Positions 1,301 to 11,890 of a stretch of 64,000 nucleotides of DNA are shown in pieces. The notes beneath the pieces were generated by a model. That model had not been told where the DNA came from. It made no database searches and was given only the letters and a program-made list of their open reading frames with translations. A program made the translations under genes and the position numbers. Source of the DNA: Dimorphilus gyrociliatus (lineage: Eukaryota; Animalia; Annelida); contig CAJFCJ010000005.1 in the NCBI GenBank assembly GCA_904063045.1, positions 3,342,165 through 3,406,164 of the forward strand, read 5' to 3'. How positions within the stretch are numbered: position 1 is the first letter of the stretch; the number at the start of each line of letters is the position of its first letter.

Positions 1301-2813
<1,513 letters not shown>

Positions 2814-3305: not shown

Positions 3306-5807
<2,502 letters not shown>

Positions 5808-6514
5808 ATTTTAAGAATATGATATAGTTTAAATACTTTTGATTTTTTTTTGTTTGCTGCTGTAGAGACAGTGCAGGCTTGAAGAGAAATGCGTTTGGAA
5901 TGCAGATTTGCAGTGGGGATCAGGTAACCATGCTCATGGCAAAACTTTTTACAGTCTAATTGTCATTAAATTTCAAATAAATTTATCTAATAAACTGTTC
6001 TTTTAAAGATATATATTTAAAAAATAAAGAATTTATGAATATTTGATAACATATCAATATTTTCTTTCTAATAAATTACATTAAAAAATCACTTCAACTT
6101 TAAAAATACACATTTCTCTTTTAATGAAATTTGAAATATTTATTAAAGATAACTAAAACTTAAATTATTAAATATTCATTACATATTTAATTTTAATATT
6201 ACTCATATTAATAGAATTCGAATGATTATTTCCCAATCAAGTGAATAGATTAACAAATCAATGTAAAATAAAAATTAGGAAGCTTTAAATATAGTTTTAT
6301 CAATAGTTCTTTTCTTCATCTTATCATGTAGATGCATTTAGTTATTCCATTCAGATTACTTTCTCTTATTCTATTTATTATATAGACTAATTTCATTACG
6401 AAGGAAATGCATTATTCTAAATTTAAGACATTTTGTTTTCAGATTAATTAGATTTACTTTGAGCTTCTCCTAAAGAGAATCTTTCTTTGAAAGTATTAAT
6501 AGCCCTATTCGTTA

Positions 6515-7837
6515 TTAAGGACTATTGTCAATAGGATGTGTATTAATAACAGGTTTGTTCTCTATGCACTTAACTCTAGATGATAATAGTAGAGTTGATA
6601 TAGTTTTATCATAATACGTAGAATTTATGTTTATATTAGATATCCAAACAGTTTTACAATTACCACCTAAAACGTCTTTTAACAATCTCGTATCCTTACC
6701 ACTCCTATAAGGAACATGGCTACTATTGTCTGCAAGAGCTGCCACTACCATAGCCAATGGAGTTAATGATTTACTAATGTATTTAGCTTCCGTAGAATGT
6801 TGATTACAACATTTATATGTATTTTCACAATCCCAGGCCTATCAATAAAGAATATTTGAAAATTAATTATGGAAATTAATATTTTCATAATTAATTTAGC
6901 AATAATTAACCTTCATATCAATAAAATACAACCTTCCAGTCCTAGTTGAATTTTTAATAGAACTATCATCACTTTTAGTAGTTTTAATACTATCAATTGT
7001 TACAGTAAAGAAGGATGTAAATTCTCTTGTAAATTCTACAAAGGAAAGTTAGTTAGGAGCAATTTCTATTTAAATGAACCAATTTAAAGTAACAAATTAC
7101 TATTTTTGCCTTTTATGAAGTATTCATACATTTCATTTGAATTTTTAGTTGGTACCGTTGATAAATTTTGAATGTATGTACCTAATTCTTTAGATTCTTT
7201 AATTTTTACTATTTGATTTGGGTCATCGTTTAATAAGTCTTCTATCTCGTCAAAAGCAGTATTATGCCTATAGTATGATACCTTTACTGAATACTTTTCA
7301 CTATTATTTCTTTCTTTGATTAAATCAAATATATATGTAATTGATCTTGGTATAATACCAAAATCTCCTATATTATCTCCATCACCATTCATAGTATAAC
7401 TTCTACCAGATCCGCTTACGCCATAACTGATAATTGCTCCGTTATATCCATTTATTACATTCTCTATTACAGATTGTGCACATGTATTAAAAATTTCTTC
7501 TTGCGAAGTTAAATGATCAAAAACATTATCAAAGTTGAATATTTTCACTTCTTTTTTATCGTCTTTCGGGTTTTTTACTAGTATTGAATTAGTAGAAGTG
7601 TTTAGCTTTGTAAATAAAAACAAGAACGATAAAAGGGATAAAAAAGAAAAATTACGCCAAAAGTACCTTAGAAGTAATTGTATCAACATTTTCATTATTT
7701 TTACTATGTATATGCGCTATCCTAACAGATACTTTAATCTTATCTTTGTAAATACAACTCTAAAGGGAAGTAAAATGACTATAAGAATTTTTATTTAGAC
7801 ATTGAAATCTTCAAAATAAATTACTAGTTACCGCCAT
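6515..7837 (-). CDS. Degenerate motor-domain-only KIF3A paralog (pseudokinesin), 5 exons, 350 aa
   Basis: Exons 7837-7832, 7759-7667, 7605-7101, 7035-6911 and 6838-6515 join into 1053 nt without internal stops. Kinesin features FNFDNVF, GYNG, VSYY, HVPYR and LGGNCKT are present; P-loop reads GVSGSGRS; switch I and II are lost; stop comes just after the neck. Confidence 0.8.
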
Positions 7838-8130
7838 AATTAATTTTTTATTGGTTAAAGAATCACATATTTTTAATTGTAAATTTTCTAAAGTTGAATT
7901 CCCAAAGCTTCTCAATACTACATAATATTCACAAGTTTGTATTTCCAGAGTAACGAACAGGTAACCTAACTTTTGCAATCTCTACTTGAGTCTAAAAATT
8001 TGATTGGCAGTTCAATATTTATCTTATATGATATTGAGTTTCCGTCTTCCGGTGATTCCATTCACCGAAACAACTTAGATATCCTCAATTAGAAGTTTGA
8101 AAAAAAGAAGTTGTTCTGTATCGAAGTGGG

Positions 8131-9357
8131 ATGGAAGTTCGAGGAGGTTGTATATATAAACCCAATTGTGTAGAATATCTTTACAATCCAAAGAATCTAA
8201 TGATTGATTATTCAATTTTTACGCAGAAGCAACGAAGAGATCATATGCTATATCAAGTGGCAATAATTCAGATTGTGTGGTTGTCAAGAAAAAGAGGAAA
8301 AATAAGAAGAGCTCATCGAACAATGATTTGGATAAAAACGCTGTCCAACAACTCCACGAGTTAGACCCTACCATAAAGGTTAAATCACATATATATGACA
8401 ATTTCACAATACACATGCAATCAGCAATTCATTTTACGAAATATATAAAGAAATTTATTTATGTATTACGGTTTATCGTTAAAAATAATGAGCTTATTTT
8501 TGTAGTATGCGCTTTCTCAGGCTGAAGGGCCAAGTCACGCTCCTACTTTCGTCATCCAGCTCGAATTCAGAGGACATTTATACAAGGGTCTTGGTAAGAG
8601 TAAAAAGGATGCAAAACACCAAGTATTTAATCATTTGTATTCTTTTTTATATCATTTGATCGTTTATAATTTATGACATTAGGCAGCTGAAATGGCACTT
8701 CGTAGCATTAAAATGTCAAACAACCTTAAACAACTATCTGTCCAGAAAAACTCTCCAACTGCTGAAACTGGTCCAACTGAGACCAAACAGCAACCAGCCA
8801 AAAAGAAAAGCCATACTTATGAGGTGTTAAACATTCAATAAAACATCAATAGTGTAAATAACTCTCTAATTGTACTTAATCAGGGAAAGAACCCTATTCA
8901 GATATTAAATGAAATTCGCAGTGATGTTCAGTATACCTGGACAAATGAGAAACAAGGTGCACAGAATACATTTATCGTTAATGCACAAGTTGATGATGTA
9001 ACATTTACGGTAAATGTTAAAATAATTATGATAAAACTTTATTCTATTCTTATTATTAAAATTGATTTGATTAAATTTATAGGGTGAAGCTCATAATAAA
9101 AAATTAGCAAAGTCAAGAGCCGCTCAGTCTATACTAACAACCATGTACGGCTTGGAATTCGAACTTGCTGCCTGTACGTATTTAAAATTCAATGTTTCTG
9201 GTTTAACGAATGTATTTTACGCACATAAAAGGTTACAATATAACCTTTTACAATAAAGAGATCTTGATTAATAGTTCAAGATAGCGCATAAGTTGATTCT
9301 TTATTGTAAAAGTAGTATTTACATTGTATATACATTATATATAAATATATATAATAT

Positions 9358-9392
<35 letters not shown>

Positions 9393-11890
9393 CAAATATA
9401 TATAATATATATATATATATATAAATATATATACAGTATATACATGCTGTATATTTGCAGTAGGGAGGAAAAATTGCAGACACACTAAAGTTTTATGTAA
9501 AACTTTTGTTCTGTTATTAGCTATACAAGACAAGCTTATAGTTCTTTTATAGTTCAGATGAAACTATCTCCTTATAAGAAACAATTATAGTCTTGACGAC
9601 TGTTTTTATAAGGAAATAGTTGATAATATCATCTTTCAGCAGAAACAAAAATAATACATATTTCTTTTCTACTGTTCGTCTATAATATATAGTATATACC
9701 TTGGTTATACTATTATTTGTACTTTATACTGAACTTCTATCTTAACTTATTAACCCTAATGACGTTTTCCTTCTTTTTCCTTATACACTCATAGCATTTG
9801 TCAACGAATTCGACTTAAAGTAATTGATAATCGCTTACGGCTAACTTCGTAACCGGATGTGAATTACTTTAGGTCAACATCGTCGAACGAATGTGTCTCC
9901 TTATATCTTTAATACCAACCCCTTAGTACCTTAATGAATTTGTTTTTTAAAAAAAAAGCTACGGTAAGTAAAATAAAAAAGAAAAGAAAAGCGTAAGCAA
10001 AAAAATCAAAATGATGTTTGAAAATAGGTGTTCAATTTTTGTTTGTTTAAGTAGATGATTGTATATTTTATTAAAGCCGTATTTATTAATATTTATATAA
10101 TATAAAATGAATATTATTTGGCTTTTTTTCTATATTTTATTTCATATTTAGATTCTATAGACAGAATGATGCTATTTCACTTATTTTAAGCTTTTTTTCC
10201 CTTTTTCCTATTAAAATAATCAGTAAGCAAACAAAAGTTGTATACTATTTTTTAAAATATTGTTTTAAACAGTTTATAGAACTTTTATAGAAATATAATT
10301 TGCCTTTGGTTTATTTAAGACTCGGCTATTTTTTTCTTTTAAAAGAAAGAAAAAATAATAAAATGCATTTATCAAGAGAAATTACGCCCTAAACCTTCAA
10401 AAATAGTTTTCTCCTTCAGTTAAGAGATTAGAAATCTTTAACCCTAATTTTATAACTGTGTTTACCTTTAGATTAAAAGCATAGTGTAAAGGTATTTGTG
10501 TGTTAGTATGTTTTATGTGTAATAAGTTACTTTTGATTAGCTGGAACGGAACACGCCATCTGCAAATCAAAGTCTATAATATCGGCAGCGAAACATGCCA
10601 ATGGGGCTGTTAGTAACTTAGCGGATAAAATTTCCTATATGATCAATTCTAAATTTGCGGATTTAACGGATAAAGAGGGAAAGAGAAAAGTTTTAGCTGG
10701 AGTGATAATGAGTAGGAAGTTGGAGAATGAAGAACAGATATTTGATGTTGTCTCTGTGACAACTGGAAATAAATGCTTAGGCGGCCTTCATCTTTCGAAG
10801 ACTGGAAAAGCGTTACACGATTGCCATGCCGAAATTCTTGCTATAAGAACGTTGAGGGGATTTTTCTGGAAGCGTTTAACGCTACTGAAAAATGGTAGTT
10901 CGGATAAATACGACGTATTAGAGCCAGATGGCGATTCAGGAATGTTTAGATTGAAAGAAAATGTTGAATTTCACCTTTATATATCGACATCTCCGTGCGG
11001 AGATGCAAGAATATTTGCTCCATATGAATCTGAAGGGGAGGAAGATCGCCATCCAAATAGACAAAGCCGCAAATTGCTTCGAAGTAAAATTGAAAATGGG
11101 GAAGGTAGGCTTATTATATTTTTAGAGTGACTCGGAAGTTGTTGAAAAGTCAATTATTGCCATAAATTTTTAATATCACAAAAAAGCTGCTTTCTTTAAT
11201 TCTCACGAGACTTTTCAATAACTTTTATGTCATGCATTTGTTATTTTATTACCATCTTTATTATTTTTAGGAACAATCCCGGTAAAAGTCGGCACAATAC
11301 AAACATGGGATGGTGTTATGGTTGGAAGCAGGCTTTTGACTATGAGCTGTTCGGATAAACTAATGAAGGCTATTGTCTTGGGCATACAAGGCGCTTTATT
11401 GACTTACTTTATTAGGCCGGTATATCTTCAATCTATAACAATTGGGTCAATGTTTCATGCAGAACATATGGCAAGAGCTATGTACGGTCGTTTGCCACCT
11501 TTAGGAAATTTACCAAAACCGTTTAGAATAGTCAAACCAATTGTATCAGGAGTTACTTCACCCGAAGTTCGAAAAACAACCGAGTCGCCACAAAAAGCAA
11601 TGGTTTGGTGTGACGATGAATTACCAATGGAAACTATAACATGTTTATCTGGCAAATTTCCAGACGGTACCCAATCAAAACTATGCAAAAGAGCCATGTT
11701 TTCCTATTGCCAATCAATTTGGGGATTAGGAAACACAGCTAATCTAATTCTTCCAGAATTATATGTAGATGCAAAGAAACATGCAAAAGAATTTCAATTA
11801 GCAAAGAAAATATTAATGGATGAATTAAAGAATAATAACGTTGGTGTCTGGGCGGAAAAACCCGTTGAAACTCAACAGTTTCAATTATGA
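8131..11890 (+). CDS. ADAR2: Adenosine deaminase acting on RNA, ADAR2-like (2 dsRBDs plus deaminase domain)
   Basis: dsRBD1 KNAVQQLHEL...GPSHAPTF...GKSKKDAKH; dsRBD2 GKNPIQILNE...GEAHNKKLAKSRAAQ; deaminase DCHAEIL, SPCGDAR and TMSCSDK. Start codon at 8131 is tentative; long intron 9174-10540. Confidence 0.9.
9335..9432. repeat. Imperfect (AT)n microsatellite in the ADAR intron
   Basis: Long alternating TA run; explains the spurious YI-repeat ORF 9276-9533. Confidence 0.9.

Follow-up and report, generated by a model that had tools for sequence, protein, structure and literature searches.

A probable tandem copy of the KIF3A motor exons encodes a free-standing, putatively ATPase-dead kinesin head in Dimorphilus gyrociliatus

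Among kinases and proteases, enzyme copies that are catalytically dead (pseudoenzymes) are familiar as regulators. To our knowledge, few dead cytoskeletal motors have been described, and these are always tethered, as is the case for Vik1/Cik1, KIF26, and KIF7. Kinesin heads have also been disabled in the laboratory. The engineered changes G234A and E236A turn kinesin-1 and KIF17 into rigor motors, which neither move nor release (PMC2172855), and E236A nearly abolishes hydrolysis (PMC12005725). The outcome of such rigor changes is tight, non-moving binding to microtubules (PMC2172855, PMC12005725), while the switch I changes S205A/H206A make kinesin dissociate from microtubules (PMC2172855). 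In fungi, one phylogeny has named an orphan group "pseudoKinesin-21" (PMC5076506). Here, we describe a gene from the annelid Dimorphilus gyrociliatus, which we refer to as the pseudo-kinesin gene, located in a 64,000-nt stretch of contig CAJFCJ010000005.1 (positions 3,342,165 to 3,406,164, hereafter the window). It lies next to an ortholog of KIF3A and encodes a kinesin head in which the nucleotide-binding motifs are degenerate. We consider it probable, with real room for doubt, that this gene originated as a tandem copy of the KIF3A motor exons, that it is old and restricted to one lineage, and that it is expressed as a free-standing head of 350 residues that acts as an ATPase-dead binder of microtubules or tubulin.

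The DNA of the window is eukaryotic and AT-rich, and its introns measure ~60–70 nt. When rebuilt base by base, the pseudo-kinesin gene occupies positions 7837–6515 on the minus strand and consists of five exons, with a coding sequence (CDS) of 1053 nt that corresponds to 350 codons and a TAA stop. Its four introns, which are 72, 61, 65, and 72 nt long, all have GT..AG ends. The open 350-codon frame and the full set of splice sites proposed in the initial annotation are thus confirmed, and so is a stop right after the neck, which falls five codons past the neck-linker motif. The product comprises only a kinesin head and its neck linker, and it lacks the stalk and tail that characterize kinesin-2 (which forms a heterotrimer with KAP). 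Two exons match the Pfam kinesin motor (PF00225), exon 3 over profile positions 30–185 (E 5e-35) and exon 5 over positions 244–327 (E 3.3e-21). By this motor-profile match, which is far beyond chance, the gene belongs to the kinesin superfamily.

Correctly spliced pseudo-kinesin RNA exists. The transcript data come from one public run (2017) served as assembled contigs, which we examined over positions 5600–8300. In one contig of 2264 nt, precisely the four predicted introns are spliced out (CT..AC on the plus strand), which is the junction support that had been suggested as a check. This contig uses the in-frame donor of exon 4 at 6911 and ends at 6196, which gives a 3' untranslated region (UTR) of ~320 nt, and no splice joint leads from it into KIF3A. 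The public annotation, by comparison, splits the locus into two partial unnamed proteins. DgyrCDS3881 (260 aa) covers exons 1–4 and uses a donor located 20 nt upstream (exon 4 end at 6931), from which a frameshifted tail results, and DgyrCDS3882 (246 aa) has its start at Met105. The 350-aa product is given by neither of these partial models and is missing from the protein databases searched, and the split annotation of the reference genome hides it from database users. The D. gyrociliatus genome paper makes no mention of kinesins (PMC7854359).

The kinesin catalytic motifs N1–N4 are not found intact in the pseudo-kinesin, which differs at 18 of the 24 invariant positions of the pocket. The adenine-binding RCRP/RxRP motif reads RIAH, with loss of its proline. 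The P-loop has become GVSGSGRS, in which the glycines and the final hydroxyl are kept, with Gln-to-Val and Lys-to-Arg replacements, the latter at the Walker lysine. A deletion that falls precisely where exon 4 begins has removed ten residues from the end of alpha3 and from L9, and the switch I sequence SSRSH is replaced by TREFT. Finally, switch II DLAGSE reads DMKAWD, with Gly changed to Ala and Glu to Asp, and judged by its sequence DMKAWD appears to be the natural equivalent of the rigor change G234A, plus a changed E236. All four altered motifs reported in the initial annotation, as well as the retained microtubule-binding loop HVPYR, are therefore present as described. Some elements of an active site do persist, since the P-loop keeps the shape GxxGxGRS and both the switch II aspartate and the neck-linker residues are retained, and one could imagine that the protein still binds nucleotide or hydrolyzes it slowly. 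We regard such residual enzyme activity as very unlikely. The Walker lysine, SSRSH, the switch II Gly and Glu, and the RxRP proline have all changed together with most of the pocket, and single changes at such positions are known to abolish turnover (PMC2172855, PMC12005725).

Outside the pocket, the picture is different. Alpha4, L12 (HVPYR), alpha5 (TRLL..LGGN), alpha6, and the neck-linker residues (I-x-N-K-P-x-I-N) have mostly been retained, in contrast to L11, which is wholly rewritten and contains three cysteines and one tryptophan. A structure was predicted with AlphaFold2 for residues 105–350 only, using as input the public partial protein DgyrCDS3882 (from Met105) and an alignment of 71 sequences. 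The predicted local distance difference test (pLDDT) score was 83 and the predicted template modeling (pTM) score was 0.81, with low confidence only in L11. In this model, alpha3 leads almost straight into beta6, and the head superposes on those of OSM-3, Giardia kinesin-2, and KIF3B with template modeling (TM) scores of 0.80–0.84. The model thus predicts that the kinesin alpha/beta fold is retained in residues 105–350.

To quantify this uneven retention, we aligned the pseudo-kinesin with 142 kinesin-2-like motors and considered the columns with an invariance of 90% or more, where the pocket was defined as the four nucleotide motifs and the microtubule interface as L8 and L11-alpha4-L12-alpha5. 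The pseudo-kinesin keeps 6/24 invariant columns in the nucleotide pocket, 20/26 in the microtubule interface, and 25/33 elsewhere, whereas KIF3A keeps 83/83. The difference between pocket (6/24) and non-pocket (45/59) columns is significant (Fisher p=3.5e-5), for motif windows that follow textbook definitions but were picked after the finding was read. When compared to the overall identity of 35%, non-pocket retention is far higher (76%, p=7e-11), and pocket retention (25%) is no different (p=0.39).

A second line of evidence comes from the coding sequence itself. At four-fold degenerate sites, the pseudo-kinesin gene and KIF3A are 37% identical, where 35.5% is expected from composition, and silent sites are therefore saturated. 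By contrast, identity reaches 53% at codon position 1 and 61% at codon position 2, compared to 30% and 27% upon shuffling (z 9.8 and 14.4, respectively). Since the branch of KIF3A itself is short, it is the copy that was restrained at non-synonymous sites while its silent sites were randomized. We also evolved the KIF3A motor CDS neutrally towards local intron composition until 35% identity was reached, which produced a mean of 18 in-frame stops, with the frame open in 0/300 runs. The locus does not look like an unprocessed pseudogene: its frame is open, 4/4 introns are GT-AG, its substitution pattern is non-neutral, and a spliced contig is present. These sequence comparisons indicate that the frame and structural core have been held by purifying selection and that constraint was lifted specifically from the nucleotide pocket. 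The initial annotation had argued for selection rather than decay, and the simulation, the saturation contrast, and the pattern of retained residues all bear this out. It had also called the divergence heavy, which understates the age of the copy, as synonymous sites are saturated.

The position and structure of the pseudo-kinesin gene point to where it came from. It lies 707 bp upstream of the KIF3A ortholog, on the same strand. The motor of this neighbor is closest to KIF3B and KIF3C among solved structures, but its C-terminal exon scores 225 bits against human KIF3A (9w9h_A) versus 70 bits against KIF3B, and because of this tail we assign it as the KIF3A ortholog. The first four introns of the two genes correspond. 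Intron 1 falls after codon 2 in the pseudo-kinesin gene and codon 3 in KIF3A, in phase 0 in both. Intron 2 is at CDS nucleotide 99 in both, also in phase 0, with 99 nt of coding sequence in exons 1 and 2 of each gene. Intron 3 is at CDS nucleotide 604 in both genes, in phase 1, following an exon 3 of 505 nt in each, and intron 4 interrupts the identical aligned codon within switch II (DMK/ versus DLA/) in phase 0. In thrips (Frankliniella occidentalis), KIF3A has introns 3 (phase 1, GNKN/R) and 4 (phase 0, DLA/GSE), which must therefore be older than the insect/annelid split. It lacks introns 1 and 2, which among the genes examined are common only to the two worm genes.

Sequence comparisons are consistent with the same origin. 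The pseudo-kinesin is 35% identical to KIF3A over 354 residues (E 2e-61), the solved structures that it matches best, by sequence and by fold, are kinesin-2 heads, and kinesin-2 predominates in the best 150 of 32,567 matches of an exhaustive profile search, whose query was built by aligning the two partial proteins from the public annotation. At columns diagnostic of KIF3A or KIF3B, it agrees with KIF3A at 3/4 and with KIF3B at 0/4. In phylogenetic trees, its long branch attaches basally without support, beside one Paramecium and one choanoflagellate sequence (25% support). The branch is too long and the composition too odd for a placement. We take this attachment as long-branch attraction, and a position as sister to KIF3A is not rejected (approximately unbiased [AU] test, p=0.256). 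Adjacency, shared strand, intron coordinates, and kinesin-2 best matches together argue for a local, KIF3A-derived origin. The local duplication of KIF3A proposed in the initial annotation is upheld on these grounds, with the diagnostic columns in agreement. Overall, position and gene structure lend good support to a tandem duplication of the KIF3A head exons, and sequence lends weak support.

The unsupported tree placement leaves some room for another account of the locus, namely that its exons are alternative 5' exons of KIF3A or that it is a copy of another kinesin-2 paralog, the more so as introns 3 and 4 are ancient and might also occur in KIF3B. This we consider extremely unlikely. The contig contains an in-frame stop, after which it continues without further splicing for 320 nt, up to 6196, and nothing joins it to KIF3A. 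Moreover, the two introns absent from thrips KIF3A include intron 2, the coordinate of which is identical in the neighbor, and the diagnostic columns favor KIF3A over KIF3B.

Downstream of the pseudo-kinesin gene, we detected no stalk-like coding remnant, and there is no significant DNA similarity between the two loci outside the exons. A good donor-like site (AAA/GTAAAT), left unused in the contig, is present at 6456–6460 on the minus strand, within the 3' UTR and at a distance of 381 nt from where exon 5 begins. The intron 5 donor of KIF3A sits 376 nt into its exon 5. The donor-like site, which no stalk-like coding sequence follows, may mark where the ancestral exon once ended.

We looked for relatives of the pseudo-kinesin in other species. 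No ortholog was found in an exhaustive search of 1.84 billion representative proteins or in word-index searches (59–430 aa), the latter of which matched only the two partial models of the gene itself. In the profile search, the two self matches (595 and 558 bits) are followed by ordinary kinesin-2 motors at no more than 198 bits and 31–36% identity, and the other top matches all keep both switch I and switch II. As far as these sequence searches reach, the pseudo-kinesin gene appears to be specific to the D. gyrociliatus lineage.

Several observations weigh against an old duplicate kept for a function. The gene is a singleton for which the sampled sequences contain no ortholog, in a group, the dinophilids, that is barely sampled, and its product is known from genome and transcript sequence alone. 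Support for expression consists of one assembled contig, which is fused to the divergent gene on the other side, and a shared promoter could give rise to pseudo-kinesin transcription as a side effect. The public model DgyrCDS3881 uses an alternative, frame-shifting donor. The terminal branch measures 1.75 substitutions/site under the LG model and 4.6 under a mixture model, versus 0.16 for KIF3A. In addition, FYMINK residues make up 39% versus 29%, GARP residues 13% versus 25%, and the GC content at third codon positions (GC3) is 19%, a drift to AT-rich codons that suggests that most sites are weakly constrained. The extreme branch length with its AT-driven amino-acid drift, the frameshifting splice form, the fused contig, and the failure of database searches to find relatives would all suit a recently dead relic, that is, a gene functional for most of its history and now a pseudogene, with a frame open by chance and transcription from a shared promoter. 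We nevertheless find this unlikely. Counting stop-creating and splice-destroying substitutions and ignoring indels, the probability that the frame and splice sites of the present sequence are still intact drops to 5% after 0.036 neutral substitutions/site. With frame, start, stop, and 8/8 splice dinucleotides intact, the data are compatible with a very recent neutral phase of under ~0.04 substitutions/site, which is to be set against silent sites that are saturated. The pattern of retained residues is also strongly non-random.

What the retained head does is a separate question. Since L11 has diverged and switch I is changed, binding to microtubules is not assured, and its net affinity is unpredictable from sequence because switch I changes of the S205A/H206A type detach kinesin from microtubules (PMC2172855). 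A selected pseudo-motor might instead act off microtubules, as a decoy or partner for binders of kinesin-2 heads, for example the autoinhibitory KIF3 tail, a kinesin-binding protein, or a kinase, or as a binder of free tubulin. The evidence for selection would be the same, L11 is replaced and switch I is deleted, with switch I mutants known to release (PMC2172855), and the lack of a coiled coil leaves no Vik1-style pairing. On the other hand, the best-kept surface is the tubulin-binding alpha4-L12-alpha5 face, and no partner is known or predicted. We consider an off-microtubule role improbable.

We therefore favor, with the reservation stated at the outset, an ATPase-dead head that binds microtubules or tubulin, for which the following steps can be proposed. 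The KIF3A head exons would have been copied in tandem, with the stalk either lost or never present, and the copy would have survived as an expressed head alone, lacking a coiled coil, a tail, or any cargo part. ATP hydrolysis would have been lost through the Walker Lys-to-Arg change, the deletion and replacement of switch I, and the Gly-to-Ala and Glu-to-Asp changes in switch II. The head would then bind microtubules or tubulin as a non-moving monomer, via its conserved alpha4-L12-alpha5 face, and possible modes of action are as a static occupant of the lattice, a roadblock, or a competitor of kinesin-2. More speculatively, and with the odds well against it, the pseudo-kinesin might be a natural rigor kinesin that occupies KIF3A/KIF3B sites, for example on the axonemal doublets of ciliary bands, and in this way tunes kinesin-2 traffic, be it intraflagellar or cytoplasmic, or it might titrate a regulator that binds to kinesin-2 heads. 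If true, this would represent a new form of motor regulation, by a decoy copy of the motor's own head. If it does bind microtubules, the pseudo-kinesin would offer a minimal model of a motor head without chemistry and possibly an endogenous modulator of kinesin-2, the cilia motor.

The features of the locus and its immediate surroundings are listed in Table 1.

Table 1. Exons, conserved segments, and neighboring genes at the pseudo-kinesin locus (window coordinates)
Feature	Position	Strand	Remarks
Exon 1, coding part (ATG GCG)	7832..7837	-	5' UTR continues upstream; splice 7832/7759 in transcript contig
Exon 2, 93 nt	7667..7759	-	RIAH (7723-7712) at position of adenine-binding RxRP motif
Exon 3, 505 nt	7101..7605	-	Degenerate P-loop GVSGSGRS (7422-7399); Pfam kinesin E 5e-35
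Exon 4, 125 nt	6911..7035	-	TREFT for SSRSH, 10-residue deletion at exon start; ends with DMK/
Exon 5, coding part	6515..6838	-	Stop 6517-6515; divergent L11; Pfam E 3.3e-21
Exon 5, alpha4-L12-alpha5 (HVPYR..LGGN), conserved	6718-6659	-	Followed by alpha6 and neck linker (6565-6533)
3' UTR	6196..6514	-	Transcript contig ends at 6196, unspliced, no joint into KIF3A
5' exons of divergent plus-strand gene	7838..8300	+	Up to 7957, 8008-8146 (ATG 8131), 8227 onward
KIF3A ortholog, neighbor/parent gene	3306..5807	-	8 exons, protein of 684 aa with every catalytic motif intact

The contig that spans the pseudo-kinesin gene also removes two further GT..AG introns on the plus strand, at ~7958–8007 and ~8147–8226. 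Since a single contig carries joints of opposite strands, the assembler must have merged two head-to-head transcripts with overlapping 5' ends. The 5' exons of the plus-strand gene overlap the 5' end of the pseudo-kinesin gene (window 7832–8300), and this antisense overlap could form double-stranded RNA. Further along the plus strand, open reading frames (ORFs) at 10639–11887 encode an adenosine-deaminase (editase) domain (Pfam A_deamin, E 3e-34 and 9e-46). If these deaminase exons and the 5' exons belong to one gene, the divergent gene may be ADAR-like. The initial annotation had speculated on a role of the pseudo-kinesin in cilia or sperm, but this link found no support in a scan for X-box (RFX) motifs, which detected no site near either promoter and a total in the window below chance expectation.

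Elsewhere in the window, a single-exon ORF of 357 aa at 178–1251 on the plus strand contains an MT-A70 methyltransferase domain (Pfam E 4e-28) and possibly encodes a METTL4-like adenine methyltransferase. Directly downstream of KIF3A, a cysteine-rich ORF of 372 aa (1301–2419, minus strand) has no Pfam match at E <=0.001. TA-rich simple repeats (TATATA/ATATAC units) at 9276–9533 give rise to spurious minus-strand ORFs.

How does the pseudo-kinesin compare with known systems? It would be to a motor head what a pseudoenzyme is to an enzyme. With KIF3A (orthologs KLP-20, FLA10, and KRP85), it shares the fold, the gene structure, the alpha4-L12-alpha5 face, and the neck linker. It differs from it by the absence of the neck coiled coil, the stalk, and the KAP-binding tail, by its four degenerate nucleotide motifs, and by a branch that is ~10 to 30 times longer. 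Like Vik1/Cik1 (PMC3384419, PMC4338441), it has a kinesin-like fold that appears unable to use nucleotide and has been kept for what would be a microtubule-related role. Vik1/Cik1, however, are tied by their coiled coil to the catalytic yeast kinesin-14 Kar3 and have lost recognizable kinesin sequence, whereas the pseudo-kinesin is free-standing, recognizable by Pfam, and derived from an animal kinesin-2, in an unrelated lineage. This agrees with the distinction drawn in the initial annotation, as the protein has no coiled coil and its relatives are animal kinesin-2 motors.

The heads of KIF26/VAB-8 (kinesin-11) and KIF7/Costal-2 have likewise been repurposed as non-motile modules for microtubule binding or scaffolding (PMC12646758, PMC12919046). 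Those proteins are ancient and widely conserved and have long non-motor regions, while the pseudo-kinesin is a head alone, found in one lineage. Finally, it resembles laboratory rigor kinesins (KIF5 T92N, G234A, and E236A; KIF17 G243A) in having Ala at the position of G234 and a changed E236 (PMC2172855, PMC12005725). It differs from them in being a natural gene and in adding to these changes the loss of switch I and the Lys-to-Arg replacement in the P-loop. In effect, evolution would have produced in an isolated kinesin-2 head what was engineered in the rigor mutants, and selection would have preserved the outcome.

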